Assembly: GCF_039654945.1 (NCBI RefSeq)
Contig: NW_027361698.1
Span: 22,940,001 to 23,004,000, forward strand
Source: Dendrobates tinctorius
Taxonomy: Eukaryota
DNA: 64,000 bases
Direction: 5' to 3'
Shown: piece after piece, positions 3,951-58,314 of the stretch
Position numbering within the stretch: the stretch's first letter is position 1
Layout of the letters: each line of letters starts with the position of its first letter
Notes under the pieces: generated by a model
The model's input: only the letters and a program-made list of their open reading frames with translations
Database searches by the model: none
What the model was told of the DNA's origin: nothing
Program-made: the position numbers and the translations under genes

Positions 3951-3959
3951 GTATGCATT

Positions 3960-14952: not shown

Positions 14953-15978
14953 CCCCTTTACCCCAAGGGTGGTTTGCACGTTAATGACTGGGACAATTTT
15001 TACAATTCTGACCACTGTCCCTTTATGAGGTAATAACTCTGGAATGCTTCCATGGATCCTGGTGATTTTGACACTGTTTTCTCGTGACATATTGTACTTC
15101 ATGATAGTGGTACAATTTCTTTGATATGGCTTGCATTTATTTTTGAAAAAAATGGAAATTTGGCCAAAATTTTGCAATTTTCCAACTTTGAATTTTCATG
15201 CCCTTAAATCACAGAGATATGTCACACAAAATACTTAATAAGTAACATTTCCCACATGTTTACTTTACATCAGCAGAATTTTGGAACTAAAATTTTTTTT
15301 AGTTAGGAAGTTATAAGGGTTGAAAGTTAAACTGTGATTTCTCATTTTTACGACACCATTTTTTTTGGGTGACCACATCACATTTGAAGTCACTTTGAGG
15401 GGTCTATATGATAGAAAATACCCAAAATTGACACCAATATAAAAACTGCACCCCTGAAGGTGCTCAAAACCACATTCAAGAAGTCTATTAACCCTTCAGG
15501 TGCTTCACAGGAATTTTTGGAAAGTTTAAAAAAAAAATGAACATTTTACTTTTTTTCACAAAAAAAATTACTTCAGGTCCAAATTTTTTATTTTCCCAAG
15601 GGTAACAGGAGAAATTGGACCCCAAAAGTTGTTGTACAATTTGTCCTGAGTATGCTGATTCCCCATATGTGGGGGTTTTGGTGCATGGCAGAGCTCAGAA
15701 GGGAAGGAGCACCGTTTGACTTTTCAATGCAAAATTGGCTGGAATTGAGCTCAGACACCATTTTGAAAACTAGACCCACAAAGGAACTTATCTAGATGTG
15801 TGGTGAGCACTTTGAATCCCCAAGTGCTTCACAGAAGTTTATAACGTACAGTCGTAAAAATAAAAAATCATATTTTTTTCAAAAGAGATCTTTTAACCCT
15901 CAATTTTTTATTTTTACAAGGGTAACAGGAGAAATTGGACCCCAAAAGTTGTCCAATTTGTCCTGAGTATGTTGATAT
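14953..15978 (+). mobile_element. Truncated piggyBac-like non-autonomous element (same family as 2272)
   Basis: TTAA|CCCCTTTACC terminus; colinear with 2272-3240. Confidence 0.8.
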
Positions 15979-16142
15979 TCAGGACAAATTGCTCTGCTGT
16001 GCAACCCTCAGCTGTCAGCTTTAGCAAGGTTGGTTATCAAGAATAGAGGGGTCCCCCAAAAGCCAGGAATTCATGTGCCGCATTCAGTAAGATCACAGCG
16101 TAATAGGTTAGAATAGAATAAATAGAATAGATATATACACAT

Positions 16143-21174: not shown

Positions 21175-22422
<1,248 letters not shown>

Positions 22423-22446
22423 CTATCTATCTATGTAATATATATA

Positions 22447-24093
22447 CAGTCATATGTTAAAGTTTGGGCACCCCTATTAATGTTAACCTTTTTTCTTTAT
22501 AACAATTTTGGTTTTTGCAACAGCTATTTCAGTTTCATATAACTAATAACTGATGGACTCAGTTATATTTCTGGATTCAAATGAGGTTTATTGTACTAAC
22601 AGAAAATGTGCAATCTGCATTTAAACAAAATTTGACCGGTGCAAAAGTATGGGCACCCTTATCATTTTCTTGATTTGAACACTCCTAATTACTTTTTACT
22701 GACTTCCTGAAGCACTAAATTGGTTTTGTAACCTCATTGAGCTTTGAACTTCATAGTCAGGTGTATCAAATCATGAGAAAAGGTATTTAAGGTGGCCACT
22801 TGCAAGTAGTTCTCCTATGTGATTCTCCTATGAAGAGTGGCATCATGGGCTCCTCAAAACAACTCTCTAATGATCTGAAAACAAAGATTATTCAACATAG
22901 CTTTTCAGGGAAAGGATGCAAAAAGTTGTCTCAGAGATTTAACCTGTCAGTTTCCACTGTGAGGAACATAGTGAGGAAATGGAATAACACAGGTACAGTT
23001 CTTGTTAAGCCCAGAAGTGGCAGGCCAAGAAAAATATCAGAAAGGCAGAAAAGAAGAATGGTGAGAACTGTCAAGGACAATCCACAGACCACCTCCAAAG
23101 ACCTGCAGCATCATCTTGCTGCAGATGGTGTCACTGTGCATCGGTCAACAATACAGCGCACTTTGCACAAGGAGAAGCTGTATGGGAGAGTGATGCGAAA
23201 GAAGCCGTTTCTGCAATCAAGCCACAAACAGTCGCCTGAGGTATGCAAAAGCACATTTGGACAAGCCAGTTACATTTTGGAAGAAGGTCCTGTGGACTGA
23301 TGAAACAAAGATTGAGTTGTTTGGTCATACAAAAAGGCGTTATGCATGGAGGCTAAAAAACAAAGCATTCCAAGAAAAACACTTGCTACCCACAGTAAAA
23401 TTTGGTGGAGGTTCCATCATGCTTTGGGGCTGTGTGGCCAATGCCGGCATCGGGAATCTTGTTAAAGCTGAGGGTCGCATGGATTCAACTCACTATCAGC
23501 AGATTCTTGACAATAATGTGCAAGAATCAGTGACGAAGTTGAAGTTATGCAGGGGATGGATATTTCAGCAAGACAATGACCCAAAAGACCGCTCCAAATC
23601 TACTCAGGCATTCATGCAGAGGAACAATTACAATGTTCTGGAATGGCCATCCCAGTCCCCAGACCTGAATATCATTGAACATCTGTGGGATGATTTGAAG
23701 CGGGCTGTCCATGCTCGGCGACCATGAAACTTAACTGAACTGGAATTGTTTTGTAAACAGGAATGGTCACAAATATCTTCATCCAGGATCCAGGAACTCA
23801 TTAATAGCTACAGGAAGTGACTAGAGGCTGTTATTTTTGCAAAAGGAGGATCTACGAAATATTAATGTCACTTTCATGTTGAGGTGCCCATACTTTTGCA
23901 CCGGTCAAATTTTGTTTAAATTCAGATTGCACATTTTCTGTTAGTACAATAAACCTCATTTGAATCCAGAAATATAACTGAGTCCATCAGTTATTAGATA
24001 TATGAAACTGAAATAGCCGTTGCAAAAAACAAAATTGTTATAAAGAAAAATGGTTAACATTAATAGGGGTGCCCAAACTTTAACATATGGCTG
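22447..24093 (+). mobile_element. Full-length IR/DR Tc1 element (1647 bp)
   Basis: TA TSD; ~210-bp near-perfect inverted repeats, each containing two AAAGT(T/A)TGGGCACC direct repeats. Confidence 0.95.
22845..23865 (+). pseudogene. Tc1 DD34E transposase pseudogene
   Basis: MGSSKQLS...GRPRK. Frameshift near 23232; premature TGA at 23725-23727 and 23818-23820; ends GSTKY*. Confidence 0.9.
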
Positions 24094-33130: not shown

Positions 33131-35347
33131 GATGTGTTCTTCTGGTTACACGGCGCAACTTCTGACTGACCGGAAGTCAAGGCTAACAAGTTATCAATGT
33201 GATTCTATGAGAACCTTATTCTGGCCTCATTCTGGCTCTCATAGAAGTACATTGAGCAGTGACCTCTGACTCAACATGCAAACAGTGGGGCAATCCGGCA
33301 AGGTCACAACCTGCAGAAGATGATCAGAGCAGCGCAGATTACAGAAGAAGTAAGAACTGGTAAGTATATTACAAGGGGCAGGGAACTTACATTAGTGACA
33401 CCACTCCAGCTACAAAATAAAAAAAATGCTAGAGTGATGCTTTAACGATGTTTATTAATTTACTAAATAAATAAACATTTAGTAAATGAATACATGAGCA
33501 AGGGAAACATTCGAGTTTACAAGCTTTCTTTATGTAATAAAAATACAAACCATAGAACTTGTGGTAATTTGAGTAACTGAACACACTTTGTGAAATGAAT
33601 GTATAAGTTACAGAGGACAAGAGCCTTTGCATGTTTTTGTTTCTATTTAGTGAGTTATATATCGCCTGTGTTACATATAAAATACAAGAAATCCAACCCT
33701 ACTTCACAGGAAATTTTTCCAAGACTTCTATCTTGAGCAACAGCTGTCAGACAGAGTCCATATAACACATTACATGTACAGTAAATTAGATGAAATTGAG
33801 AATAATTACCTTGCTGCAGAATCCAACATACTCTAAAATAAATTTGAGAATAAAAGTGCATACATCACGTGTCATAGTTAAGCTGACTACAGCATACTCA
33901 AAACATAGCATCACATTAACCCCTTACCTACAATGGACGTAATATTCCGTCCATGTGACCCTGGACCTAACTACCATGGACGGAATATTACGTGGTGAGC
34001 GCCGCTGATCGCGGCCGGGTGTCAGCTGATTATCACAGCTGACACCCCGCACAATGTGTCAGGGGCGGTCACGGACCGCCCCCGACATGTTAACCCCTTG
34101 TACACCGCGATCAAACGCGATCGCGGTGTACCGGGGGTTAAAGGGAAGCTTTTCCAGGGAGGGGGCTCCCTCCTTGCTTCCCTGAGCCCCCCACGGCAGC
34201 GCAATGTGCAGCGCTGCTGCGGGGGGCTCTTTCCCTACAGGCCCCCGGATCCAAGATGGCGACGGGGGCCTGCAGGGAGCTGACTTCCTCACTGCCTGCA
34301 AAGCGCAGGCATGAGGAAGTCTGCAGCAGTGCCTGTGACAGATCGCTGATCTGTCACAGTGATCGTGATGTGACAGATCAGCGATCTGTCACAGGACAGT
34401 GATGTCCCACCTGGGACAAGGTAATAAAGTAAAAAAAAAAAAAGTGTTAAAAATAATTTTAAAAAAATCGCTAAATAAATTAGTAAAAAAAAAAAAATAT
34501 TCCCCAATAAATCCATTTTTTCAAAATAAAAAGAAACAAAAACAACAAAAGTACACATATTTGGTATTGCCGCATCCGTAGCGACCCGCCCTATCAAACT
34601 GTCCCATTATTTAACCCCTTTAGCGAACCCCTTAAAAAATAAAAATAAAAAACGAAGCAAAAAATAATGATTTATTATCATACCACCGAACAAAAAGTGC
34701 AATAACGCGAGATCAAAAAGACGCATATAAATATCCATGGCACCGCTGAAAATGTCATCTTGTCCCGAAAAAACGAGCCACCATACAGCGTCATCCGCAA
34801 AAAAATAAAAAAGTTATAGCTCGCAGAATAAAGCGATACAAAAATAATTATTTTTTATATAAAATTGTTTTCATTGCAAAAAACCGAAAAAACATAAAAA
34901 AACGACCTAAATGATGTATCGCTGTAACCGTACCGACCCGAAGAATAAAACCGCTTTATCAATTTTACCGCACGCGGAACGGTGTAAACGCACCCCCCAA
35001 AAGAAGTTCATGAAACACTGGTTTTTGTTCATTCTGCGTCCCAAAAATTGGAATAAAAAGCGATCAAAACATGTCACGTGCCCGAAAATGGTGCCAATGA
35101 AAACATCAACTCGTCCCGCAAAAAATAAGACCTCACATGACTCAGTGGGTCAAAATACGGAAAAATTATAGCTCACAATATGTGGTGATGCAAAAACTAT
35201 TTTTACAATAAAAAGCGTCTTTTAGCGTCTGACAGCTGCCAAACATAAAAACCGCCATAAATAGTAAATCAAACCCCCCGTTATCACCTCCTTAGTTAGG
35301 GAAAAATAATAAAACTAAAAGAAAATGTATTTATTTCCATTTTCCCG

Positions 35348-35491
35348 CTAGGGTTAGGGTTAGGGTAGGGTTAGGGCTAGGGTTAGGGTTAGGGCTAGGG
35401 TTAGGGTTAGGGTTAGGGCTAGGGTTAGGGCTAGGGTTAGGGCTAGGGCTCAGATTAGGGTTAGGGGTGTGTTGGGGTTAGGGTTGGAGTT
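35348..35491 (+). repeat. Interstitial telomere-like (TTAGGG/CTAGGG)n tract
   Basis: About 20 hexamers read directly. Confidence 0.95.
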
Positions 35492-35494
35492 ATA

Positions 35495-37670
35495 ATTGGG
35501 GGGTTTCCACTGTTTGGGCACATCAGGTGCTCTCCAAAGGCAACATGGCGTCTGATCTCAATTCCAGCCAATTCTGCGTTGAAAAAGTCAAATGGTGCTC
35601 CTTCCCTTCCAAGCTCTGCCATGCGCCCAAACAGTGTTTTACCCCCACATGTAGGGTATCAGCCTACTCAGGACAAATTACAAAACAACTTTTGGGGTCC
35701 AATTTCTCCTGTTACCCTTAGGAAAATAAAAAATTGGGGGCAAAAATATAATTTTGCGGAAAAAAATGTTTTTTTTATTTTCATGCCCAGGCGTAATAAA
35801 CTTCTGTGAAGCACTTGGGGGTTCAAAGTGCTCTCCACACATCTAGATAAGTTCCTTGGGGGGGTCTAGTTTCCAAAATGGGGTCACTTGTGGGGAGTTT
35901 CAATAGTTTAGGTACATCAGGGGATCTCCAAACGCACATGACACCCGCAGACCAATCCATCAAAGTCTGCATTCCAAAACGTCACTACTTCCCTTCCGAG
36001 CCCCGACGTGTGCCCATACAGTAGTTTTCTCCCACATATTAGGTATCAGCGTACTCAGGACAAATTGGACAACAACTTTTGGGGTCCAATTTCTCCTGTT
36101 ACCCTTGGGAAAATAAAAAAAATGGGGACTAAAAGATGATGTTTGTTGAAAAAATGCGATATTTTTATTTTCACGCACGGGCGTTATAAACTTCTGTGAA
36201 GCACTGGGGGGTTCAAAGTGCTCACCACACATCTAGATAAGTTCATTAGTGGGTCTAGTTTCCAAAATGGGGTCACTTGTGGGGGGTTTCCACTGTTTAG
36301 GTACATCAGGGGCTCTCCAAAAGCAACATGACACCCGCAGACCATGCCATCAAAGTCTGCATTCCAAAACGTCACTACTTCCCTTCCGAGCCCCGACGTG
36401 TGCCCATACAGTAGTTTTCTACCACATATGAGGTATCAGCGTACTCAGGACAAATTGGACAACAACTTTTGGGGTCTAATTTCTCCTGTTACCCTTGGGA
36501 AAATAAAAAAATTGGAGACTAATTGATCATGTTTGTGGAAAAAATACGATTTTTTTATTTTCATGCCCTGGCATTATAAACTTCTGTGAAGCCCTTGGGG
36601 GTTCAAAGTGCTCACCACACATCTAGATAAGTTCCTCAGGGGGTCTAGTTTCCAAAATGGGGTCATTTGTGGGGGGTTTCCACTGTTTAGGTACATTAGG
36701 GGCTCTCCAAAGGCAACATGACACCCGCAGACCATTCCATCAAAGTCTGCATTCCAAAACGTCACTACTTCCCTTCCGAGCCCCGACGTGTCCCCATACA
36801 GTAGTTTTCTCCCACATATGGGGTGTCAGCGTACTCAGGACAAATTGGACAACAACTTTTGGGGTCCAATTTCTCCTGTTACCCTTGGGAAAATAAAAAA
36901 AATGGGGACTAAAAGATGATGTTTGTGGAAAAAATACGATTTTTTTATTTTCACGCCCGGACGTTATAAACTTCAGTGAAGCACTGGGGGGTTCAAAGTG
37001 CTCACCACACATCTAGATAAGTTCCTTGGGGGGTCTAGTTTCCAAAATGGTGTCATTTGTGGGGGGTTTCCACTGTTTTGGTACATCAGGGGTTTTCCAA
37101 TCGCGACATGGTGTCCGATCTCAATTCCAGCCAAAAACGTCAAATGGCGCTGCTTCCCTTCCGAGCTCTGCCATGCGCCCAAATAGTGGTTTACACCCAC
37201 ATGTGGGGTATCAGCGCACTCAGGATAAATTGCACAATATCTTTTAGGGTCCTGTTACTTTTTGAAAAATAAGAATTGAGGGTGAAAAGATCATTTTTGT
37301 GGAAAAAATATGATTTTTTAATTGTACCGCTGTACGTTATAAACTTCTGTGAAGCCCTTGGGGGTTCAAAGTTCTCACCACACATCTAGATAAGTTCCTT
37401 AGGGGGGTCTAGATTCCAAAATGGTGTCACTTGGGGGGGTTTCCACTGTTTAGGTACATCAGGGGCTCTCCAAACGCGACATGGCGTCCGATCTGAATTC
37501 CAGCCAATTTTGCATTGAAAACGTCAAACGGCGCTCCTTCCCTACTGAGGTCTGCCATGCGCCGAAACAGTGGTTCCCCCCACATATTAGGTATCAGCGT
37601 ACTCAGGACAAATTGCAAAATAACTTTTGCAGTCCAATTTCTCCTGTTACCCTTGGTAAAATAAAGAAAA
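35495..37670. repeat. ~390-bp tandem array (about 5.5 units)
   Basis: Anchor CACATCTAGATAAGTTC at ~35838, 36228, 36618, 37008 and 37381. Confidence 0.92.
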
Positions 37671-39342
37671 TTGAACCTGAAGTATTTTTTTTTAATATTC
37701 AAAAAATTCCTGTGACGCACCTAAAGGGTTAATAAACTTCTTGAATGTGGTTTTAAGCACCTTAAGGGGTGCAGTTTTTAGAATGGTGTCACTTTTGGGT
37801 ATTTTCTATCATATGGACCCCTCAAAGTGGCTTCAAATGTGATGTGGTCCCTAAAAATAAAATGGTGTTGCAAAAATGAGAAATCGCTGGTCAATTTTTA
37901 ACCCTTATAACTTCCTAACAAAAAAAAATTTTGGTTTCAAAATTGTGCTGATGTAAAGTAAACATGTGGGAAATGTTATGTATTAAGTTTTTTGTGTGCC
38001 GTATCGCTGTGATTTAAGGGCATAAAAATTCAAAGTTGGAAAATTGCGAAATTTTCAAAATTTTCGCCAAATTTCCGTTTTTTTCACAAATAAACGCAAG
38101 TTATTTGAATGCAATTTTACCACTAACATGAAGTAAAATATGTCACGAGAAAACAATGTCAGAATCACCGGGATCCATGGAAGCGTTCCAGAGTTATGAC
38201 CTCATAAAGGTACAGTGGTCAGAATTGTAAAAATTGGCCCGGGAGTTAACGTGCAAACCACCCTTGGTAGTGAAGGGGTTAAACTTTAGAACCACAACCC
38301 AAACTCCAGGGAACGCCAGGCGGCAATACAACAAAGAAAGCTAACCTGTTTTAAAAAAAAAAAGATATATACGGTATAGCTTTTATATACAGTATTTTCC
38401 TCCACTGACTGCATTTGAAAGTCTTTAGAGTGAAAAAACAAAAATTTCTGGCACAGATCCATTTTAGGGACTGATGTTAGTGTAGCACTATATCCTTGAG
38501 AAAAAACTTAAAACATGATTTTAAAGTCTATCTCCAGAACATTTTTACTTCGATAATGCAGTGACAAACCACTAATTGCAGCAGACCAGGCTATGGACCC
38601 CATGAGTCGGGCGACAGTGCCGGATCTTGGGCCCCCCACTCACACATCACACTTTCAACACTATCTTCATGCTGAATGCAGATACACAGTAGTTGAATAC
38701 AATGATGACACAAGAAGATGTTTATTCCCAGGACTGCAAATTATTCATTTTCCACAGGATAAGTGGGTATTTCACCAATGGGCCCCCTACTTAACCCAAA
38801 AAGGGTCGGAAATGGCCCATCTCAATGGAGGTGCTAGCCCTGTTCTGGGTGTTTGATCAATAGGACCCCCCTCATCATCAAGTTGTCAACTGCCCACAGG
38901 ATAACTTGCACTGTTGGGGATAACCTTTTAACTGTTTCCTGACCCATGATATAATTTTCAATTACAACAAAATGACATGATAGTATGTCTTAATGACACT
39001 AGCTGTACCTATGTGATCAGTTACAGGAGATGGACTGCAGCTGAGATAACTATGATCATGGCTGTTTAACCTCTTACATGCTAATTTAAATTTTATTTAC
39101 TGTAAGCCATTGCACCCCCCAATACATGATTAACACAATCCTGCATGATGGTCAGATTATTATGACCTGCAAAGTGTAGTTAGCATGTGTACCTTACATA
39201 AACACCATAAAAAAGAACAAATAAAACACTAAGTATTGCATAAATATGTTTGTTTTCCATACTTCTCCCCCATAAAAGAATAAAAATAAGTAAAGAAAAA
39301 ATAAATAAATGTAATCAAGTTACATATAGCCCAAGCAAAGAT

Positions 39343-43954: not shown

Positions 43955-44485
43955 AATCAGTTATCATCTTTGCCTTGATGAGGGGCAATACCCACAAACA
44001 CCGTGTCTGAAAACTGAGATTCTGATTTGCCTTTTATCTGAAGTCACATTTCAAGGCCCGTTAAAGGGTCGATAGTGACTTGTAGAATTGCTGCATCCAA
44101 CAGGTGACGCTATAGAGTTCAAGTCCTCTTCCTCTCTGAAGAGGCAATTTGTATATAAAATTGCCCAGAGGATCATTGCACAGCAAATAAGCCTACAAAC
44201 GTTGAAATGCCAGAGCTGGTATGTCACTCTGCACAATGAGAAACTACCCCTTTGACCTCAGTCCAGAGACTCACACCTAGCCTAATCAATTCTCACACAT
44301 TGCACTGATGAGGGGCAGTACCCCGAAACACCATGTCTCAAATTGAAATTCTGATTTGACTTTTATCCTAACTCACATCTTAAGGTCTGTTAAAGGGTTG
44401 ATAGAGACTTTTAGGTTTGCTGCTTCCAACAGGTGGTGCTCTAGAGTTCAAGTTCTCTTCCTCTCTGAAGATGCAATTTGCATAT
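43955..44485 (+). mobile_element. Satellite-2-like / non-LTR retrozyme tandem repeat (330-bp period, ~1.6 units)
   Basis: (T/C)TGATGAGGGGCA recurs at 43975 and 44305, with colinear downstream sequence. Each unit carries a hammerhead motif. Confidence 0.8.
44291..44350 (+). ncRNA. Type I hammerhead ribozyme motif
   Basis: UUGCA-CUGAUGA-GGGG(CAGUA)CCCC-GAAA-CA(CCA)U-GUC with a canonical core and predicted cleavage after 44337. The 3' strand of helix I is mutated in this copy. Confidence 0.8.
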
Positions 44486-45676: not shown

Positions 45677-46619
45677 GGGCTGAAGCGGTCTGTTTGTTAA
45701 GAAATTGGATCTGTTTATCTGAAAACAGAGCAGGGATGCCATGGTTAAGGAACCTTTGGGAAAGTACTGTTTGGCTGAGGTCTGACACTATAATGAAGTC
45801 ACAAGACTTTTTTGACTGACAGCTGTCAAGATTTAGGAAAGAGTTTATTTTCTTCAAATTAATTTTTGCTTATCAGCAAGGATTGTTAAAGTGAAAACAG
45901 CATAGTAGATTTACCTAAGGTGGTCACAACTATGCTAATACTATCGTTTGCTGTAACTGCAGCTTGTTGTGATGAGTTGTAAAAGTGCAGCTACTGCGGC
46001 ATATTTTGAAATTGGTGCAGAACTGTAAAATATGTAACATGTTGTGATTGGTACTTTTACTGCAAAATGGCAAAATATTATACTTAACCCCTTCATGACA
46101 CAGCCTATTTTGACCTTAATGACCTGGCCTTTTTTTGCAATTCTGACCAGTGTCCCTTTATGAGGTAATAACTCAGTAACACTTCAACGGATCCTAGCGA
46201 TTCTGAGAATGTTTTTTCGTGACATATTGTGCTTCATGTTAGTGGAAATTTAGGTCGATAATTTTTGCGTTTATTTGTGAAAAAATCAGAAATTTGGTAA
46301 AAATTTAGAAAATTTCGCAATTTTCACATTTTGAATTTTTATTCTGTTAAACCAGAGAGTTATTTGACACAAAGTGGTTACTAAATAACATTTCCCACAT
46401 GTCTACTTTACATCAGCACAATTTTGGAAACAAATTTTTTTTTTGTTAGGAAGTTATAATTAGAGCTGAGCGAAACGGATCGAAAAATTTCAAAAGTCGC
46501 CGACTTTTGGCAAAGTCGGGTTTCATGAAACGAAACCCGACCCTAGGATGAGGTCGGCCACGAGGTCGGCGACTTACGCGCCAAAGTCGCGTTTCAAAAG
46601 TTTGTTTTGCGCTCTTTTT

Positions 46620-46770
46620 CAGCCAATCAGGATCCACGGACACTGTGGGCATCGTGATGACATAGGCACGGGTCACCACCATCTTTCAGAAGGGCATGCA
46701 AGTGATTGGCTTACTTTGGTGGGCGTCACAGGGGGTATAAAAGGGCGTGCACGCCGACCGCCATCTTACT
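46620..46770 (+). promoter_or_regulatory. Candidate hAT transposase promoter
   Basis: CCAAT (~46623), inverted CCAAT (~46705), TATAAAAGG (~46736) and a YY1-like CGCCATCTT (~46759). Motif inspection only. Confidence 0.4.
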
Positions 46771-47330
46771 TCTGCCGATCTTAGCATAGGGAGAGGTTGC
46801 TGCTGATTCTGTAGGGAGAGTGTTAGGCAGGGAAGAAGAAAAAAAAACTGCTTCTGCTGCTAGCGATTGTGCCTGTACAACACACCAGTCACTGTGTGTG
46901 CAGTGCAAGGGGAGGCTATATTGTGGTGTATCAGTGGTGTTGGTTGTTGGGCTGCCTTCTAAGGCTTCCTGACAGCTGCATTGCTGTTTACCCACTGCTC
47001 TGCAAACTGCTTTTTTAAAAGCAATCCCAATTTTTTTTTTGTCCTGCTGAGGTACTGAGCTGCAAACTGCTTTTTTAAAAGCAATCCCAATTTTTTTTTT
47101 GTCCTGCTGAGGTACTGAGCGTGCATGTTTTCACACCATACAGCGGTGTACGCTCCTCACACAGTACCGTGTAACGGCTGTTATCACAGCCACAGTGAAG
47201 CTATCTGTGTCACTCTGTGAGAATAAGTCGAGGACATGTTCCGTTCTTACAGACCTGCACTCTAGGGAGATTCCTACTCTGCCCAATTCTACATACACCT
47301 TGTAGTTTGTGATACACTAGCCAATTTCTG

Positions 47331-48195
47331 CCTGTGACATAGCGCTGTGATATTCAGTGGGCCTCACACAATCCAAAAGTGTCCAGTGTCCACAAGTGTC
47401 TGCAGAAATTCAAAATCTCCCTTATCCTCTAGTCACTTTGGTCACAGCTGTGCCATCGAGCCTGTGACATAGCGCTCAGATATTCAGTGGGCCTCACACA
47501 ATCCAAAAGTGTCCAGTGTCTGCAGAAATTCAAAATCTCACTTATCCTCTAGTCACTTTGGTCACAGCTGTGCCATCGAGCCTGTGACATAGCGCTCAGA
47601 TATTCAGTGGGCTTCACACAATCCCAAAGTGTCCAGTGTCCACAAGTGTCTGCAGAAATTCAAAATCTCACTTATCCTCTAGTCACTTTGGTCACAGCTG
47701 TGCCATCGAGCCTGTGACATAGCGCTCAGATATTCAGTGGGCCTCACACAATCCAAAAGTGTCCAGTGTCCACAAGTGTCTGCAGAAATTCAAAATCTCA
47801 CTTATCCTCTAGTCACTTTGGTCACAGCTGTGCCATCGAGCCTGTGACATAGCGCTCAGATATTCAGTGGGCCTCACACAATCCCAAAGTGTCCAGTGTC
47901 CACAAGTGTCTGCAGAAATTCAAAATCTCACTTATCCTCTAGTCACTTTGGTCACAGCTGTGCCATCGAGCCTGTGACATAGCGCTCAGATATTCAGTGG
48001 GCCTCACACAATCCAAAAGTGTCCAGTGTCCACAAGTGTCTGCAGAAATTCAAAATCTCACTTATCCTCTAGTCACTTTGGTCACAGCTGTGCCATCGAG
48101 CCTGTGACATAGCGCTCAGATATTCAGTGGGCCTCACACAATCCAAAAGTGTCCAGTGTCCACTAGTGTGAGCAGAAATTCAAAATCTCCCCTGT
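47331..48195. repeat. 130-bp tandem array (~6.7 nearly identical units) upstream of the hAT ORF
   Basis: CCTGTGACATAGCGCT starts at 47331, 47461, 47581, 47711, 47841, 47971 and 48101. A separate 60-bp duplication lies at 47000-47119. Confidence 0.95.
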
Positions 48196-48267
48196 CCTAT
48201 AGACACATTGTATCTTGTTTTACATTACTATATAGTTTGTTGGATTTTGTCTACATTTCTACCAAAA

Positions 48268-51200
48268 ATGAGGAAGGCTGGTGGAAGAGGCCGTGGAATT
48301 GGGCGGGGGTTGGCAGCTGGTAATGATGGTGTTGGTGGTGGATCTGATGGTAGTGGCAAGAGCAAAATAGGACCGAATGCAGGAGGTGTTGAGCCTGCGT
48401 TATCGGCTGGCTCCATAAGGCTTCGAAGGCTTAGTTTTCTAGGAGTTGGCAAACCGCTTTTAAAGCCAGAGCATCAGGAAAAAGTTTTGTCTTACATTGC
48501 TGACTCAGCCTCCAGCTCTATCGCCTCCTCTTCTGAAGTTGTAAAAAGTAAAAGCACTGAGTCGTCATTGGAGGCTCATGTTCATGAACCACACCTTTCC
48601 TTGTGTCCTTCACCCCAACCAAGATTGAAGGATGACGCAGGCCATACTACTGATTACTCCATGGAGCTGTTTTCACATACCATGCCTGGATTATCAAGTC
48701 AAATGGTGAATTACCCAGGCCAAGATGAATCTGACATGGAGTGCACTGATGCACAGCCGCTGATGGATGATTCTGCTGGTACATTCAGTCAGAGCACTAC
48801 ATTGTCCTCACAGTGTACAGAGCCAGATTCTGACCCTGATGAGACTCAGGTGCCCCTTCCCGCACACTATACCACCATACACGGTGACACAGAGGAAGGT
48901 GCACATGACATTGAAGAGGAGGTGATGGATGACCCAGTTGTTGACCCAGATTGGCATCCATTGGGGGAAGAGGGTGCTGCTTCCAATAGCTCAGATGAGG
49001 AGCATCCACAGCAGACATCGACATCGCAACAGCTGTTATCTGGCAGGCCCGGAGCACTCCAAAGACAGGTTCCAAAAATTGCTGGACAGCTTGTCCAGAG
49101 GGTCAAAAGATCACAGCGTGCTAGGCCGCAAAATGTCTGCCAAAGTAGGAAGAGTGCAGTGTGGCACTTTTTTGAACAAAATCCTCATGATCAGGCCAAG
49201 GTTATCTGTAAGAAGTGCGCAAAGACCTTTAGCCGAGGGAAAAATCTGAAAAATTTGAATACCAGTTGCATGCTTAGACATTTAAACACCATGCACTTGC
49301 AAGCGTGGACACAACACCAAACCTCAAGTGCCACACGTGCAACTGATCACAACGAAGGTAGTCAGCAACGCTACATTGTTTCCCCCACTGTAAGCCCACC
49401 GGTTAGCACAGCAGCAAATGTTGAGGTGTCGTTGCAAGGCCACAGCAGTCAGGGAATCCCACTGTTATATCAACGAAAGACTGATTCTAGGCCATCAGAA
49501 AGAACACCAACTCCATCACCATCATCAAACCTCTCTCAGTCTGCCCTGTCCACCGCTACTTCCACCATATGCAGCTCTCAAGTCCAGCTCAACCTCCCAG
49601 ACACTATGAGTAGGTCAAGAAAGTACTCAGTCTCTCATCCGCGTACACTGGGTTTGAACGCCCACATTGCCAAACTAATCTCGTTTGAGATGATGCCGTT
49701 TCGGTTGGTGGAAAGCGCAGCTTTCCGCGAACTCATGGCCTATGCAGTACCACGCTATGACCTACCCAGTTGCCACTTCTTCTCTCGCAAAGCCATCCCA
49801 GCCCTCCACCATCATGTGAAAGACCACATTGTCCATGCACTCAAGCAGTCAGTGAGCGGAAAGGTGCACCTCACAACTGATGCATGGTCCAGTCGGCATG
49901 GCCAGGGCCGTTACGTGTCCATCACTGTGCACTGGGTTAATGTGGTGGATGCAGGGTCCACAGGGGACAGCGGTGGTGGGACAGTGCTGCCTAGCCCACG
50001 GTCTAGGAAACAGTTGGCTGTAGGTGTTCGACCCTCCTCCTCCTCCTCCTCCAGAAGCGAAAGCTCGTCCACAGAGCGCAGTCGTACGAGCACTCCATCT
50101 GCAGCTGCCACTGTTGCACACGAGGTGTCCCCCTATCGAGCAGCTAGTGGAAAGCGTCAGCAGGCTGTGTTGCAGATGATGTGTTTGGGCGACAGACACA
50201 CCGCCGAGGTGCTGGCCGAGTACTTGAAGCGACAAACTGAGTCATGGCTGGGCAGTGTACATCTTGAGGCAGGCAAGGTAGTTAGTGATAACGGCCGTAA
50301 TTTTGTGGCAGCCATAGCCCTTTCAAAACTCAGCCACATACCTTGCTTGGCTCACACCTTGAACCTGGTGGTGCAGTGCTTCCTCAAAAATTATCCGGAG
50401 TTAACAGCCCTGCTCCAGAAGGTGCGAAGACTGTGCGCGCACATACGCCGGTCGCCGTGTACACTCCGTTCGTATGCAGAAGCTGCAGCGATTGCCCCAC
50501 CTTCCCAACCACCGCCTCATTATCGACATTGCAACAAGGTGGAACTCCACCCTGCACATGGTGGAGCGGCTGTGCGAGCAGAGGCAGGCCATAATGCATT
50601 TGTGGGAGGATACACGGCCAGGCACTTTGAGAGCAGACATGTAGTTGACAGGTGTGCAGTGGTCGAAGCTGAAAGACCTCTGTAAAGTCCTTCAGTGTTT
50701 TGAGGAATGCACACGGCTGGTAAGCGCAGACAACGCCATCCTAAGCATGAGCATCCCACTTATGCGTCTGCTCATGCAAACTTTGACGCACCTTAAGGAG
50801 CAGGCTTCTGCAGCCAATGTTGATGAGGAGGAAGAGGAGGAGGGAATCCTTGATGACATTCAGCCATTGTCTGCTCAGGGACCTCTCCTGGACGAGGTGG
50901 AGGAAGAAGAGGAGGAGGAGGAGGAGGATGATGGGGATGATTACTTAGGGGAGGAGGATGCATCTCGTGGGGCAAGTGAAAATGTTGGCGTGGCAAGGTC
51001 TGGTACAGGGTTTGTGCGTGACTGGAGGGATGTGGATTTGCCAGAAAGTGCTCCTCCAACCAGCACTCGCAGTGCATCATTGACACCGGGAACATTGGCC
51101 CACATGTCAGATTATGCCTTGCAGATCCTAAAAAGGGACCCCCGCATTGCCAAAATGATGAACGATGACGACTACTGGTTGGCCAGCATCCTGGATCCAC

Positions 51201-51801
51201 GCTATAAAGGCAAATTACAAAACATCATGCCACAGGAGAACCTTGACCTAATATTGGCTAATAAACAAGCAACTCTGGTAAATCGGTTGCTTGAGGCATT
51301 CCCAGCACACAGCAGCGGTGATGGTTCTCACACGAGCCGTACGGGCCGGGGTCAGCTTGGCAGAGGTGTTCGTGGTGCACACAGCAGAAGTGGCGTTGGA
51401 GACAGGGGTTTCATGACAATGTTGTGGACTGATTTTTCAAGTACCGCTCACACAACTGGTAATACTGCATCGATGGAAAGTAACAGGAGAAGAGCAGTTG
51501 TCAACTATGGTTACAAACTACTTTTCCTCCCATATCGATGTTCTCCCACACACGTCATTCCCCTTTGACTATTGGGCCGCTAAACTGGACACCTGGCCTG
51601 AATTGGCACAATATGCCTTACAGGAGCTCGCTTGCCCAGCTGCAAGTGTGCTATCGGAAAGTCTTCAGTGCAGCTGGATCAATCCTGACAGAAAAAAGGA
51701 CCCGTCTGTCAACCCAAAATGTGGATGATCTAACCTTCATTAAAATGAACCACGCATGGGTTTCCAAGGATTTTGTCCCACCTTCCCCTGATGACACATA
51801 G
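48268..51801 (+). pseudogene. hAT transposase pseudogene (BED finger, DDE, hATC dimerisation domain)
   Basis: BED finger VWHFF...CKKC...LRHLNTMH; LTTDAW, VVSDNG, CLAHTLNL, TRWNST, WPELAQ...SE.VFSAAG. Frameshifts near 50458, 51495 and 51658, and a TAG at 50642-50644. Confidence 0.92.
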
Positions 51802-52491
51802 GGTTACAGAAAAATGACTTGCTTTGGTCCACCTCTTCCTGGGACTTGACCTATTTCACCTTTTGCATCAGCTGAATGTCCAACATCAACATATGCCACT
51901 TTCTAAAACTCCCTAACTGTGCTGCCTCCCCCCCCATGGCCGGGGTCACCACCTAGCGCACGACACCGTGCGAGTGCCGTTGCCCTGGACAGGTGGGTAG
52001 GCCGACTCTTGGGCGCAGGCACTGGCACAGGGTCCCTCATAGTGCAATCAAGTATCTCTGACGGTGGTGGTGCACACCCGCCGTCAGACACACCGCCGTA
52101 CTATGAGGGGCCCAGTGCCAGTACCGACGCCCACGAGTGGGCCCCCCTTGCTTGGGCAGGGCCCCAGCATTTGCAATCTTTACCTCTCCCTGCTCCTCCG
52201 CTGTGTAGTCTGGGCCGTCAAATCCATACTGTGCCTGACACCGTTTGAGCCTGCCTCCTGATGTATAGACATATATTTTGAATGTGTACGCTATCCATAC
52301 ATGTTATCTGGGGATACGGTACCCTTTCTCACCTTTGTGCAATCACGTGCAATCCATACTGGGCCTAACACCGTCTGAGCCTGCCTCCTGATGTATAGAC
52401 ATATATTTTGAATGTGTATGCTATCCATACATGTTATCTGGGGATACGGTACCCTTTCTAACCTTTGTGCAATCACGTGCCAGAGCCTCAC

Positions 52492-52766
52492 GTGTCCCTC
52501 TAGTAAGCTGGACTCGGACCGCGGGGCATGACGGAGTCTCGTTCGTTAAGGGAATTAAGCTTGCAATGTGTGCATCTGTTCTGTAGCTGGCATGGTTGAG
52601 GTTTCCCAGGTGGAGTCGAATTTAACCGTAGGCTCCACTCCTGGTGGTGCCCTTCTGGACATTCCTTTAAGGTTCAGCTTTGCAACCATACTGCCCACGT
52701 AAAACAAACACTTTGCCTTCATGAACGCTGTTTGGAGGGTCATGACTCGTGGGAATAACGCCGCCC
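52492..52766 (-). pseudogene. Degenerate 18S rRNA fragment in two blocks (52492-52558, 52595-52766)
   Basis: Plus strand has GAGTCTCGTTCGTTA.GGAATTAA, GGCTCCACTCCTGGTGGTGCCCTTC, TTCCTTTAAG.TTCAGCTTTGCAACCATACT and GGGAATAACGCCGCC, the reverse complement of conserved eukaryotic 18S rRNA segments in the correct order. Confidence 0.85.
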
Positions 52767-53835
52767 AATCAGTTAACCTGCTAGAGAGATCCTTCGTTGC
52801 TCCCAAGCATGACATCACACTCCCTAGGAAGAAGGTAATGTCACTGTGGCGACCGTACTCCTGGGCGCGACACAAGTGCACTGATGCCCAGCCACTGCTC
52901 GATGAATCTGCTGGTACATTGACCCAGACCACTACATTCCCCTCGCACGCTACACGGCCTGAATCTGACCCTGATGAAACTCAGGTTACCCTTACCATAT
53001 ACAGTTCCATCTTACACGGTGACAAAGAGGAAGCTGCAGATGAAAGTGCAGGTTCGGCCCACCCGCCATCAGACACACCACCGTACTATCAGGGGCCCTG
53101 TGCCAGTGCCGTCGCCAACGAGTGGGCCCCCCCTGCTTGCTCAGGATCACAGCACTTGCAAAGTTGAAATACTGTGCAGTGAGATGGAAGATGGGGACGA
53201 CGAGGAGTCCAGACAAGTACAGGGATTCCCTAGCGAGGAGACTTATTTGATTGTTTTCAATGTTGGGACAGCAATTTTTGGGGAGCACTATACTCTGGAG
53301 AATGATAGATGGGGCCCACCATACACTGGAACATTCCAAAGGTGGACATCAGACACTGGAGCAGCATTTACAGGGCCCATTATACACTAGAGCATTAGAA
53401 ATGGGGCCCATTATGTTTGGAGCATTATTTGGGCCCATAAGACAGTGGAGCTTCATCCATGGGGACCAACATATACTGTAGCATTATGTGGAGCTCATCA
53501 TATACTGTTTCAAACATTATATGGGACCAATGATTCTGTATGGAGAAATAGATGGGCCTCGTCATGAGATGTAAAAAGTGAAGTATTTTTCATTGTACTA
53601 TACCGCTATTTCTCTGCCGTATCGGAGCATGATGAGTTGTGGTATGTGTTAAAGGGGCGCTCTTTCGCCCAGGGCACATGAAAACCTGGAGCCAGCCCTA
53701 CCCCCCCACAACTTTAGCCAAATAACTCCCATTTTTCAGTGCGTAACTTGTATTATGAAGTTAATTAAGGTTGACAAGCTTAAGTAAGAAGAATTGATGC
53801 TTTTGGCATTCAAATGGGCACTGTTGGTGTGTTAT

Positions 53836-56800
53836 TTAGCGGACACCATGTCGCGTTTGGAGAGCCCCTGTGTGCCTAAACATTGGAGCTCCCCCACAAG
53901 TGACCCCATTTTGGAAACTAGACCCCCCAAGGAACTTATCTACATGCATAGTGATCACTTTGAACCCCCAGGTGCTTCACAAATTGATCGGTAAAAAAAA
54001 AAGTACTTTTTTTTCCACAAAAATTTTCTTTTAGCCTCAGTTTTTTCATTTTCACATGGGCAACAGGATAAAATGGATCCTAAAATTTGTTGGGCAATTT
54101 CTCCTGAATACATCGATACCTCATATGTCATCATAAACCACTGTTTGGGCGCACGACAGGGTCCGTAAGTGAAGGAGCGCTATTTGACTTTTTGAGTGGA
54201 AAATTAGCTCCAATCGTTATCGGACGCCATGTCGCGTTTGGCGAGCCCCTGTGTGCCTAAACATTGAAAACTCCCACAATTGACCCCATTTTGGAAACTA
54301 GACCCCTTATGGATCTTACCTAGATGTGTAGTGAGCACTTTGAACCTCCAGGTGCTTCACAGAAGTTTATAACGCAGAGCAGTGAAAATAAAAAATCATT
54401 TTTTTCCTCAAAAATGATATTTTAGCACGCTATTTTTTATTTTCACAAGGGTAACAGGAGAAATTGGACCACAAAAGTTGTTGTGCAATGTGTTCTGAGT
54501 ACACCGATACCCCATATGTGGGGGGGAACCACTGTTTGGGCGCACGGCAGGGCTTAGAAGGGAAGGAGCGCCATTTGACTTTTTGAAATTAAAATTACCT
54601 CTAATCGTTAGCGGACACCATGTCGTGTTTGGAGAGCCCCTGTGTGCCTAATCATTGGAGCTCCCCCACAAATAACCCCATTTTGGAAACTAGACCCCCT
54701 AAGGAACTTTTCTAGATGCATAGTGAGCACTTAGAACCCCCAAGTGCTTCACAAAAGTTTATAACGCAGTGCCGTGAAAATAAAAAATATTTTTTTTAAC
54801 TCAAAAAATTATTTTTTAGTGCACAATTTCTTATTTTCACAAGGGTACCAGGAGAAACTGGACCCCAAAAGTTGTTGTCCAGTTTGTCCTGAGTACGCTG
54901 GTACCCCATATGTGGGTGGGGGCCACTGTTTGGGCACACGTCGGGCTCGGAAGGGAAGTAGTGACGTTTTGGAATGCAGACTTTGATGGAATTGTCTGCA
55001 GGCATCATGTTACATTTGCAGAGCCCTGATGTACCTAAACTGTGGAAACTCCCCACAAATAACCCCATTTTGAAAACTAGACCCCCTAAGGAACTTATCT
55101 AGCCTTTGGAGAGCCCCTAATGTACCTAAACAGTGGAAAAACCCCACAAATGACCCCATTTTGAAAACTAGACCCCTAAGGAACTTATCTAGATGTGAGG
55201 TGAGCACTTTGAACCCCCAAGGGCTTCACAGAAGTTTATAATGCCAGGGCATGAAAATAAAAAAATCGTATTTCTTCCACAAACATGATCAATTAGTCCC
55301 CAATTTTTTTATTTTCCCAAGGGTAACAGGAGAAATTGAACCCCAAAAGTTGTTGTCCAATTTGTCCTGAGTACGCTGACACCCCATATGTGGGAGAAAA
55401 CTGCTGTATGGACACACGTCAGGGCTCGGAAGGGAAGTAGTGACGTTTTGGAATGCAGACATTGATGGAATGGTCTGCGGGTGTCATGTTGCCTTTGGAG
55501 AGCCCCTAATGTACCTAAACAGTGGAAAACCCCCACAAATGACCCCATTTTGAAAACTAGACCCCCCAAGGAACTTATCTAGATGTGTGGTGAGCACTTT
55601 GAACCCCCAAGTGCTTCACAGAAGTTTATAACGCAGAGCCGTGAAAACAAAAAATCTTTTTTTTTGCTAAAAAAAAATGATTTTTAGCCAGCAATTTTTT
55701 TTCCACAAGGGTAACAGGATAAATTGGACCCCAAAAGTTGTTGTCCCGTTTGTCCTGAATACGCTGATACCCCATATGTGGGTGGGGACCACTGTTTGGG
55801 CACACGTCGTGGCTCGGAAGGGAAGTAGTGGCATTATGAAATGCAGACTTTGATGGAATGGTCTGTGGGCATCATGTTACATTTGCAGAGCCCCTGGTGT
55901 GCCTAAACTGTGGAAACCCCCCACAAGTGACCCCGTTTTGGAAACTAGACCCCCCAAGGAACTTTTCTAGATGTGTGGTGAGCACTTTGAACCCCCAAGT
56001 GCTTCACAAAAGTTTATAACGCAGTGCCGTGAAAATAAAAAATATTTTTTTTTAACTCAAAAAATTATTTTTTAGTGCACAATTTTTTATTTTCACAAGG
56101 GTACCAGGAGAAACTGGACCACAAAAGTTGTTGTCCAGTTTGTCCTGAGTACGCTGGTACCCCATATGTGGGTGGGGACCACTGTTTGGGCACACGTCGG
56201 GGCTTGGAAGGAAAGTAGTGACATTATGAAATGCTGACTTTGATGGAATGGTCTGCGGGCGTCATGTTGCATTTGCAGAGCCCCTGGTGTGCCTAAACTG
56301 TGGAACCCCCCCACAAGTGACCCCATTTTGGAAGTTAGACCCCCCAAGGAACTTATCTAGATGTGTGGTGAACACTTTGAATCCCCAAGTGCTTCACAGA
56401 AGTTTATAACGCAAAGCTGTGAAAATAAAAAATCATTTTTTTTCCTCAAAAAATTATTTTTTTAGCTCACAAATTTTTATTTTGCCAAGGGTAACAGGAG
56501 AAATTGGACCCCAAAAGTTGTTGTCCAGTTTGTCCTGAGTACACTGATACCCCATATGTGGGGAGGAACCATTGTTTGGGCGCACGTAAGGGCTGAGAAT
56601 GGAAGTAGTGACATTTTGAAATGCAGACTTTGATGGAAAGGTCTGCGGTCGTCGTTACGTTTGCAGAGCCCCTGATGTGCCTAAACAGTAGAAACCCCCA
56701 CAAGTGACCCCATTTTGGAAACTAGACCTTCCAAGGAACTTATCTAGATGTCTGGTGAGCACTTGGAACCTCCATGTGCTTCACAGACGTTTATAACGCA

Positions 56801-57090
56801 GAGACGTGAAAATAAAAAAATAATTTCTTTTCCAAAAAAATAATTTTTTAGCCCCAATTTTTTATTTTCCCAAGGGTAACAGGAGAAATTAGACCACCAA
56901 AGTTGTTGTGCAATTTTTCCTGAGTACGCTGATACCCCATATGTTGGGGTAAACCACTGTTTGGGCACACGTCGGGGCTTGGAAAGGAGGGAGCACCGTT
57001 TGACTTTTTGAAAGCAAAATTGGCTGGTATCAATGGTTGCACCATGTCGCGTTTAGAGACCCCCTGATGTGCCTAAACAGTGGAAACCCC
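53836..57090. repeat. ~390-bp tandem array (about 8 units)
   Basis: Anchor GAACTT(A/T)TCTA at ~53932, 54313, 54705, 55091 (with a partial duplicate at 55181), 55571, 55959, 56349 and 56735. Confidence 0.92.
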
Positions 57091-57094
57091 ATAA

Positions 57095-57546
57095 TTCTAA
57101 CTCCAACCCTAACCCCAACACACCCCTAACCACAACCCTAACCCCAACACATCCCTAACCCTAATCCCAACCCTAACCATAACCCTAACCCCAACACACC
57201 CCTAACCCTATCCGTAACCCTAATTCCAACCCTAACCCTAATTCCAACTCTAACCCTAATTCCAACCCTAACCCTAGTTCTAACCCTAACCCTAATTCCA
57301 ACCCTAACCCTAATTCCACTCTAACCCTAATTCCATCCCTAACCCTAATTCCAACCCTAACCCTAATTCCAACCCTAACCCTAATTCCAACTCTAACCCT
57401 CTTTCCAACTCTAACCCTAACCCTCTTTCCAACCCTAACCCTAACCCTCTTTCCAACCCTAACCCTCTTTCCAACCCTAACCCTAACCTTCTTTCCAACC
57501 CTAACCCTAACCCTAACCCTCTTTCCAACCCTAACCCTAACCCTAA
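57095..57546 (-). repeat. Interstitial telomere-like (CCCTAA)n tract with TTCCAA/CCCTCT variant higher-order units
   Basis: Read directly. Confidence 0.95.
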
Positions 57547-58314
57547 TGGAAAAATAAAAATAAAAATAATTTCTTTATTTTATTAGTTGATCCTGCTTAT
57601 GGGGGTGATAAACGGGGGGGATTATTTACTTTTCATTCTATTTTGATCACTGTGAGAGTTTATCACAGTGATCATAATAGAATGAAGGGAAATTGCAGCC
57701 GGCGGGCGGATTGCGCATGCGCCCGCCATTTTCAAGATGGCGGCGCCCATGGTCCGGGACCGCGGGACACCGGGAGGCGGAGGGGGACATCGGAGGTACC
57801 TGGGGGGGTTGGAAGGTGGGGGGAGCACAGAGAAGGGGAAGGGGAGCCGATGATGACGGCGTGAGCCGTGGGGGGGTGGGATCACGGTCTCCAGCCATGT
57901 CCGATGCTACTGCAGCATCGGCCATGGCTGGATTGTAATATTTCATCAATTTTCATTGATGAAATATTACTATCGCTCTGATTGGCTGTTTCACTTTTAA
58001 CAGCCAATCAGAGCGATCGTAGCCATGTGGGGGCGAAGCCACGCCCCCTGTGGTGAAGAACAAAGCCCCCTGTCGGGTGACCTTTCAGTGACCTAGGTCA
58101 CCCGACCCACAGGGGGGCTTTAAAGTCATGACGCCACATAGGCGTCATGGGTCGTTCTGGCGCGACTTTTCATGATGCCTACGTGGCGTCAAAGGTTGTG
58201 AAGGGGTTAAATGGTATTAGCTAGCCATTCCCTTTTCTGGGAAAATGACATAACATAATGAAAATACATCAAATATGCATATATGTACATAGGTGTGAAA
58301 AAAATGCTGTAAGG

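Follow-up and report, generated by a model that had tools for sequence, protein, structure and literature searches.

The telomere-like tracts described here probably belong to a very abundant, non-coding, non-autonomous family of cut-and-paste TTAA transposons, in which a block of TTAGGG variants is inherited and copied by transposition. Tract-bearing copies of this family were read directly in two instances, e1 and e2, within the window, i.e. the whole stretch of 64,000 nucleotides that was analyzed (Table 1); two further copies, c3 and c4, end before the position of the tract. The initial annotation had portrayed e1 and e2 as complete TTAA-flanked elements with CCCCTT ends in opposite orientation. 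The ends and the orientation are borne out and e1 is indeed complete, but e2 is interrupted by a foreign 7.4-kb block that sits inside its right module, part of which is missing. A matching 3' inverted end of this block was sought and none was found.

Architecture of the elements

The order of modules is common to e1 and e2, namely left hairpins, box and spacer, tract, 390-bp array and right end, and in both the G strand of the tract points away from the left module, in the direction of the array; the tract occupies an equivalent internal position and strand in the two copies, as had been claimed. The units of the array are positional: the tract-proximal unit of e1 (u0) is best matched by u0 of e2 (83%), and e1 u4 and u5 match c3 u2 and u3 at 95% and 91%, respectively. 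The copies are otherwise 72-86% identical, with e1 and e2 about 80% alike. The left hairpin module of e1 showed no detectable sequence similarity to that of e2 when the two were compared, and a search of the hairpins against Rfam returned just sub-threshold miRNA-like matches. Most of the A-rich module of e1 (34413-35195) shows 74% identity to 59423-60196, which is part of a separate partial element outside e2. Left-type elements are also found standing alone, at 1268-2271 and at about 59170-60330. The window contains 9 occurrences of the motif TTAACCCCTT, as against 0.2 expected, and each of the six ends of the family within it reads CCCCTT. An internal TTAACCCCTT at 34611 was considered as a possible nested insertion and rejected, because the 59170 copy has a diverged version of it at the corresponding site, indicating that the motif is internal to that module.

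Table 1. Positions in the window of the two tract-bearing elements, their modules and two truncated copies
Feature	Positions	Strand	Remarks
e1, whole element	33920-38278	+	4,359 bp, CCCCTT...AAGGGG, TTAA on each side
e1, left TTAA target-site duplication	33916-33919	.	Match to contigs of relatives breaks off at 33915 and continues from 38279
e1, left terminus (CCCCTTACCTAC...) and hairpin cluster	33920-34412	+	11 inverted-repeat pairs in 505 bp
e1, A-rich module	34413-35256	+	No counterpart in e2
e1, conserved box AGTAAATCAAACCCCCCGTTATCACC and AT-rich spacer into tract	35257-35348	+	Aligns with e2 57547-57636 (alignment A1)
e1, telomere-like tract (TTAGGG/CTAGGG) with shared variant junction at its end	35349-35492	+	34-nt identity with e2 on the array side
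e1, ordered 390-bp tandem array	35493-37673	+	~5.6 units; TRF period 390
e1, right module and terminus (...GGTAGTGAAGGGG)	37674-38278	+	Terminal ~400 bp 81-90% identical to three other copies
e1, right TTAA target-site duplication	38279-38282	.	TTAA match; contigs of relatives resume here
e2, whole element	46088-58206	- (opposite to e1)	12,119 bp, CCCCTT...AAGGGG, flanked by TTAA
e2, TTAA on right-end side	46084-46087	.	Sequence of ends
e2, right module terminus	46088-46460	-	81% identity to e1 37905-38282
Foreign, non-family 7.4-kb block within e2	46461-53835	+	hAT-type end TAGAGCTGAGCG..., BED-finger ORF 48208-50685, other repeats
e2, 390-bp tandem array	53836-57090	-	~8.5 units; TRF and unit alignments
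e2, telomere-like tract	about 57091-57546	-	18-, 24- and 30-nt higher-order units of TTAGGG variants
e2, AT-rich spacer and CCCCCCGTTTATCACC box	57547-57636	-	Aligned to e1 box and spacer; box pattern scan
e2, left hairpin cluster and terminus (CCCCTTCACAACC...)	57637-58206	-	7 inverted-repeat pairs
e2, TTAA on left-end side	58207-58210	.	Sequence of ends
c3, right end and ~3.3 array units	2272-3953	-	Truncated within array; no information on tract
c4, right end and ~1 array unit	14953-15977	-	Truncated at fold-back junction; no information on tract

The tract and its junctions

The window contains two TTAGGG-like tracts (0 expected), at 35349-35485 and at about 57092-57546, and their lengths differ, as first reported, being 137 bp in e1 and ~450 bp in e2. 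The commonest unit in both is TTAGGG, the exact vertebrate hexamer; both are degenerate, with 13 canonical hexamers in e1 and 36 in e2, a longest perfect run of 3 units, and the variants CTAGGG, TTGGAA, AAAGAGGG and TGTGTTGGGG. The tract is a decayed minisatellite rather than a clean telomeric array. The proposed homology of the junctions was recovered on both of its sides. On the left lies the conserved CCCCCCGTTATCACC box, of the form AGTAAAT..CCCCCCGTT(T)ATCACC, followed by an AT-rich spacer and then by TAGGGTTAGGGTTAGGG, which is identical in e1 and e2; box and spacer together are 82% identical, and 17 nt are identical at the junction itself. The box pattern CCCCCCGTT(T)ATCACC is present at 2 places only in the window, one in e1 and the other in e2. 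On the array side the two copies share the junction GGTTAGGGGTGTGTTGGGGTTAGGGTTGGAGTTA without a difference over 34 nt. The interiors of the two tracts are unlike, suggesting from their sequence that they expanded separately.

An empty site in related genomes and the abundance of the family

Contigs from related organisms join position 33915 to position 38279, implying that e1, including its tract, is a single insertion. In organism F, an 800-nt contig (depth 7.06) places its letters 178-771 on 38279-38871, while a piece of equal depth on 33739-33915 comprises exactly 177 letters; the contig thereby joins the two flanks letter for letter with a single TTAA, i.e. a precise empty site. Organism C has a 1,763-nt contig that matches 33359-33915 and 38460-38870, the two parts being separated by 171 letters where an empty site would give 181, which is an approximate version of the same join, and the fit of a contig from organism B ends at 33915. 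A contig from organism A spans the boundary between flank and element (33381-33940) with 0 differences; the flanks of A and F diverge by ~2.5-3%. Thus, the whole of the 4,359-bp e1 with its tract is one insertion with TTAA duplication, restricted to the source lineage. Precise excision, instead of later insertion, could in principle have produced the empty sites, and e1 would have moved as one piece either way. The absence of the whole of e1 in relatives, together with the shared junctions and the matching u0, supports the view of the initial annotation that the tract belongs to the element and spreads by transposition.

Summed contig depth is 5-18 in the flanks and ranges from 2e4 to 4.6e6 in every bin of the element, in four species and including the flanks of the tract, in a comparison that covered the sequence on either side of 35341-35457; 247,000-425,000 contigs were placed per run. 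The left terminus and hairpin cluster of e1 is high-copy in 4 species, where all modules reach extremely high copy numbers. The joints listed in this comparison are almost all register shifts inside the 390-bp array. Exact-pattern scans of metagenome contigs with a 29-nt tract/array junction and a 28-nt conserved array motif gave no match, and for a 53-aa ORF over the array/tract junction and a 90-aa array ORF the protein collection yielded neither candidates nor an exact record.

Superfamily affinities

PiggyBac elements duplicate TTAA and have short inverted ends whose first base is C (PMC5381638). Kolobok/T2 elements also target TTAA, but have the ends AG/AGGRR (PMC6004289). The 4-bp TTAA duplication is present at both e1 and e2, and the site in organism F keeps one TTAA. 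The termini fit CCC...GGG, with the fourth base (C) outside the published motif C[C/A/T][C/A/T][T/G/A][T/A/G][T/G/A] (PMC5381638). Over the terminal 20 nt the two ends match at 14/20 positions in e1 and 10/20 in e2, as compared to the ~12-19 bp inverted repeats of piggyBac, with an uninterrupted terminal inverted match of CCCCTT in e1 and CCCCTTCA in e2. No piggyBac transposase ORF was found within the window. The TTAA duplication and the CCC...GGG ends are the grounds for a putative assignment to the piggyBac type. Beyond these two features, e1 and e2 resemble non-autonomous piggyBac elements in having palindromes and variable repeats in the subterminal region, and seemingly also in their short, imperfect terminal inverted repeats (PMC5381638); they differ in the fourth terminal base and in being far larger than a typical MITE. 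Of the other superfamilies considered, Kolobok/T2-MITE fits the TTAA target, yet the termini are CCCCTT...AAGGGG rather than AG/AGGRR. PIF/Harbinger, with its 3-bp TWA target, would have TTA at the left end and TAA at the right, which do not form a direct duplication, and sequence of the GGCTACTTTCACAC type, with no relation to CCCCTT, precedes the Harbinger-type copy whose DDE_Tnp_4 ORF lies at 61752-62555.

Spread of the block and possible origins of the tract

These observations are best accommodated by a family that would insert at TTAA in a frog-like genome via piggyBac-type CCC...GGG ends, using a piggyBac-type transposase presumably supplied in trans. The full element comprises a left terminus in which short hairpins form a variable cluster, an optional A-rich module, the conserved box and AT-rich spacer, the TTAGGG-variant minisatellite, an ordered 390-bp array in which unit number appears to vary in the middle units only, and a right end that is conserved. 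Two subfamilies, now ~80% alike, would have inherited the telomere-like block from their shared ancestor, and the block would travel to new TTAA sites along with the remainder of the element. After insertion the tract might grow or decay locally by slippage, which would explain the differing lengths and the higher-order units. The tract itself probably has no required role. The family may have arisen by fusion of two types of element, given that the left modules are unlike and that a left-type element stands alone at about 59170-60330.

With respect to the origin of the tract, a reading to which we give appreciable but clearly minority weight is that it began as a microsatellite, which developed within the ancestral element from the G-rich motif at the edge of an array unit (GGGGGGTCTAGTTTCCAAAATGGGGTCACTTGTGGGGGG), so that its likeness to telomeric DNA would be superficial; its spread by transposition would be unaffected. 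The many variants and short perfect runs of the tract are in line with such a birth, as is alignment A3, in which the junction GGGGTGTGTTGGGGTTAGGGTTGGAGTTATAATTGGGGGG falls with partial identity on the G-rich boundary of ordinary units, although the similarity upstream of TTGGAGTTA is weak. The lack of an adjoining telomerase-RNA fragment points the same way: searches of 33900-38300 and 56900-58250 against Rfam (E up to 1), which very short fragments could escape, gave no Telomerase-vert match, and on the same ground an origin of the TERC-ITS kind was rejected for both the e1 and e2 regions. On the other hand, the prevalence of the exact vertebrate hexamer in both copies argues against a microsatellite birth, and the G strand is directed away from the left module, as telomerase healing of a broken end predicts. 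The corresponding scenario, which we regard as rather unlikely, is that the telomere-like block is a birth scar rather than passive cargo, perhaps with continuing importance for the family, formed when a broken or excised left-module fragment was healed by telomerase and joined to a satellite-bearing element, and that this chimera seeded ~10^5 sites in several frog genomes that bind shelterin or form G-quadruplexes. If this were true, the sites could affect replication, fragility, chromatin and the targeting of the element.

It is still less probable that e1 and e2 are chance composites, in which a left hairpin/A-rich TTAA element lies beside, or is nested with, an element made of the array and right end, leaving the tract between transposons. 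The occurrence of the left-type elements on their own and of the array-plus-right-end pieces c3 and c4, the dissimilarity of the left modules of e1 and e2, and the frequency of TTAACCCCTT ends in the window would be compatible with this. However, organism F lacks all 4,359 bp of e1 in one block and has a single TTAA at the site, and organism C shows approximately the same; the order of modules and the box-spacer-tract-u0 junctions recur in two copies ~80% alike; and the lone array copies are visibly truncated, without a second terminus. Finally, a local segmental duplication, for which the 8-kb distance between e1 and e2 in one window could be cited, is contradicted by the comparison of their flanks, which are unrelated outside the TTAAs, and by their opposite orientation, 72-86% identity and differing left modules; independent addition of the tract at a chromosome break or fusion point, which we place with it as highly improbable, would not yield 34-nt and 17-nt identical junctions at equal positions in the element, and no fusion point is indicated at e1, where the site is empty and the flanks contiguous in relatives. 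A chromosome-fusion relic is likewise at odds with a tract of single orientation inside a TTAA-bounded element, with flanks contiguous in organisms F and C.

Relationship to known systems and significance

Interstitial TTAGGG repeats (ITS) in the cytogenetics of frogs and other vertebrates are usually read as footprints of chromosome fusion or break repair. Short ITS at double-strand breaks, including TERC-ITS, resemble the tract of e1 in being internal, TTAGGG-like and lineage-specific, with an empty orthologous site (PMC8537989; PMC9693754). In those cases what enters otherwise continuous DNA is just the tract, at times accompanied by a fragment of telomerase RNA (PMC8537989; PMC9693754), whereas the insert here is a 4.36-kb transposon whose tract junctions are shared by copies and which has no telomerase-RNA match. 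An origin of ITS from transposable elements containing telomeric repeats has been proposed; in the review that cites it, this is a hypothesis drawn from ITS that adjoin repeats (PMC9693754), while e1 and e2 represent an element whose ends and target duplication are defined, whose tract junctions recur between copies and for which an empty site is at hand. A close parallel in frogs is Xmix/Xstir (Xenopus T2-MITE, Kolobok), a TTAA-inserting non-autonomous transposon that spreads internally amplified tandem repeats (PMC6004289). Its ends are AG/AGGRR as opposed to CCCCTT, and Xstir is a short satellite without telomere-type repeats, unlike the e1/e2 family with its 4.4-4.7 kb, ordered array, telomere-like block and hairpin cluster. 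In the papers searched, no TTAGGG cargo is described for any frog transposon or piggyBac element.

The family thus provides a concrete, sequence-level case in which mobile elements spread ITS, as has long been proposed; the new observation is the absence of the whole tract-bearing e1, as one piece, from the orthologous site in related species. TTAGGG-type repeats in the middle of chromosomes need not signal old chromosome fusions; transposition spreads such repeats. Dispersed or weak signals of telomere probes in these genomes may represent transposon cargo, and the family offers thousands of dated ITS for the study of tract expansion and decay.

Architecture of the tract-bearing elements

The window contains two TTAA-bounded elements with CCCCTT...AAGGGG ends, termed here e1 and e2, each holding a telomere-like (TTAGGG-type) tract. 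The initial annotation described both as complete; both are present, in opposite orientation, although e2 is not intact, being interrupted by a 7.4-kb foreign block. The left terminus is followed by a group of short, nearly perfect hairpins (11 inverted pairs in e1 and 7 in e2, with arms of 12-27 nt), a box (AGTAAAT..CCCCCCGTT(T)ATCACC) that is found at no other position in the window, an AT-rich spacer, the tract, a 390-bp tandem array and a right module whose final ~400 bp can be aligned across the window's four copies with 81-90% identity. The two left modules share the same hairpin-chain architecture, with no sequence similarity between them. The terminal repeats are imperfect over ~13-20 nt (14/20 matches in e1 and 10/20 in e2). 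The decamer TTAACCCCTT occurs 9 times in the window versus 0.2 expected, and CCCCTT-type ends are therefore a common feature of this genome.

Features of the tract-bearing elements and other content of the window
Feature	Coordinates	Strand	Remarks
e1	33920-38278	+	TTAA|CCCCTT...AAGGGG|TTAA, 4,359 bp
e1 left hairpin module	33920-34412		
e1 A-rich module	34413-35256	+	absent in e2; 74% identical to separate partial element 59423-60196
e1 telomere-like tract	35349-35485		
e1 390-bp tandem array	35493-37673	+	
e2	46088-58206	-	TTAA|CCCCTT...AAGGGG|TTAA, 12,119 bp; 4,744 bp without foreign block
e2 foreign block	46461-53835		7.4 kb; hAT-type 5' end, BED-finger ORF
e2 390-bp tandem array	53836-57090	-	
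e2 telomere-like tract	57092-57546		
e2 left hairpin module	57637-58206		
Third copy	2272-3953		right end and part of array; truncated within array
Fourth copy	14953-15977		right end and part of array; truncated within array
Tc1/mariner transposase remnants	10104-10625; 21394-23724		
PIF/Harbinger DDE_Tnp_4 ORF	61752-62555		
G-rich tandem array	63291-63655		18-nt

The foreign block takes the place of the inner right module of e2; its BED-finger ORF spans 825 codons and is followed, after a stop, by a second ORF. It also contains internal tandem repeats of 130 bp and 60 bp, and no matching or recognisable 3' inverted end was found for it. The third and fourth copies are uninformative on the tract because both are truncated within the array. 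The fourth terminates at 15955-15992 in a fold-back junction (CAATTTGTCCTGA, 12 nt, TCAGGACAAATTG), which suggests truncation through hairpin or template-switch repair.

One hairpin of the e1 left module (34090-34141) is a 44-bp palindrome with CCCCTT/GGGGG ends and TTAA on each side, and occurs at very high copy number in each of the four species whose contigs were compared; position 34117 is G in the window copy and A in nearly all related contigs. The motif AAGATGGCG, which we take to be a YY1-type core, is present in both left modules (34253-34261 and 57734-57742) in opposite senses relative to the element, with 3 hits in the window versus 0.3 expected. Lone TTAA/CCCCTT elements of the left-module type, with hairpins and A/T-rich units and neither tract nor array, lie at 1268-2271 and ~59170-60330, suggesting that two element types were joined to form the tract-bearing family.

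The remainder of the window is TE-dense eukaryotic DNA with remnants of Tc1, hAT and PIF/Harbinger transposases. A hammerhead retrozyme had been proposed at 43955-44485, and is left without backing at the gathering threshold because an Rfam search of the whole window at gathering score returned no matches.

The tract as an ancestral part of the element

Matches to three TTAGGG units with up to two mismatches occur only inside e1 and e2, with 0 expected in the window. On the left the spacer is 82% identical overall and leads to an identical TAGGGTTAGGGTTAGGG in both elements, while at the array-side junction the two elements share all 34 nt of GGTTAGGGGTGTGTTGGGGTTAGGGTTGGAGTTA and then enter the same array unit, in agreement with the earlier claim of homologous junctions. 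The array units are positional rather than those of a homogenised satellite: in e1 the tract-proximal unit is closest to its counterpart in e2 (83%), the two distal units resemble those of the third copy (95% and 91%), and unit number varies only in the middle of the array. Outside the junctions and matched units e1 and e2 show 72-86% identity, and they lie in opposite orientation between unrelated flanks. This argues against a local segmental duplication, a point that the initial annotation had drawn from the flanks. These shared junctions in such diverged copies indicate that the tract belongs to the element and, with both junctions, goes back to the ancestor shared by two diverged subfamilies.

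The tract interiors are completely different: TTAGGG alternates with CTAGGG in e1 (13 canonical hexamers), whereas e2 has higher-order units of 18, 24 and 30 nt (36 canonical hexamers); perfect runs reach at most three units in both. Most of the present length of each tract thus stems from local slippage after the copies separated.

As to the origin of the tract, its G strand runs outward from the left module, the orientation expected had telomerase healed a broken end there. The array-side junction also shows partial alignment to the G-rich motif at the boundaries of ordinary array units, and the tract may alternatively have arisen within the element as a microsatellite, a reading that we hold with fairly low confidence. 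The tract is not a TERC-ITS, an interstitial telomeric sequence (ITS) carrying a telomerase-RNA-derived fragment, since no such fragment was detectable beside it.

Mobility and abundance

Logan contigs of four coded organisms (A, probably the source, and its relatives F, B and C) were compared with 33300-38900 on both sides of the repeat-masked segment 35341-35457. The e1 flanks are single-copy in all four (summed depth 5-18). One contig of organism A crosses the boundary between flank and element, covering 33381-33940 with zero differences. In organism F letters 178-771 of an 800-nt contig of depth 7.06 correspond to 38279-38871, and a left-flank piece of equal depth, 7.06, covers 33739-33915, exactly 177 letters (the start being derived from from_end values at 33808, 33854 and 33880). 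Given this exact fit, the contig links 33915 straight to 38279 with a single TTAA left. A 1,763-nt contig of organism C lies on 33359-33915 and 38460-38870 with 171 letters between, versus 181 for an empty site, and in organism B the fit of the flank contig ends at 33915, with 35 further letters. Thus e1 in its full length of 4,359 bp, together with its tract, was inserted in one event that duplicated TTAA and is confined to lineage A, bearing out the proposed spread of the tract by transposition. Divergence between the A and F flanks is only ~2.5-3%. Precise excision in the relatives could also produce empty sites, but is less parsimonious, as it would be required across three species; either way e1 moved as one piece.

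With 247,000-425,000 contigs placed per run, summed contig depth ranges from 2 × 10^4 to 4.6 × 10^6 across all 187-bp bins of the element in all four organisms, these depths not being copy numbers; the spacer immediately to the left of the tract and the junction immediately to its right reach such depths too. By a crude extrapolation, meant as no more than a check, the four right ends found in 64 kb would translate into copies numbering around 10^5 in a genome of several gigabases.

Classification and relation to known systems

TTAA duplication is common to piggyBac and Kolobok/T2. The Kolobok/T2 superfamily has AG/AGGRR termini (PMC6004289) and is rejected, the ends here being CCCCTT; Harbinger is likewise rejected, as a 3-bp reading yields no direct duplication. 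The ends of piggyBac begin with C, classically CCC...GGG, with short inverted repeats (PMC5381638). The present ends show the CCC and GGG, but the fourth terminal base lies outside the published motif; the imperfect inverted repeat may fit, and the window has no piggyBac transposase. The earlier piggyBac-like assignment may accordingly be kept in the narrower form 'piggyBac-type by its ends', short of proven membership.

Tandem repeats are known to be carried and spread by non-autonomous DNA transposons, in frogs for instance by Xmix/Xstir of Xenopus (PMC6004289). Creation of ITS by mobile elements with telomeric repeats has been proposed (reviewed in PMC9693754), while insertion at breaks is the best-documented mechanism (PMC8537989). 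In the literature covered, which is incomplete, we found no published description of a TTAA/piggyBac-type element with TTAGGG cargo. The status of the tract as element cargo is well supported for e1 and e2, and mobility is well supported for e1. A tract-bearing transposon adds no new principle; its relevance lies in the reading of telomere-probe signals in anuran cytogenetics.
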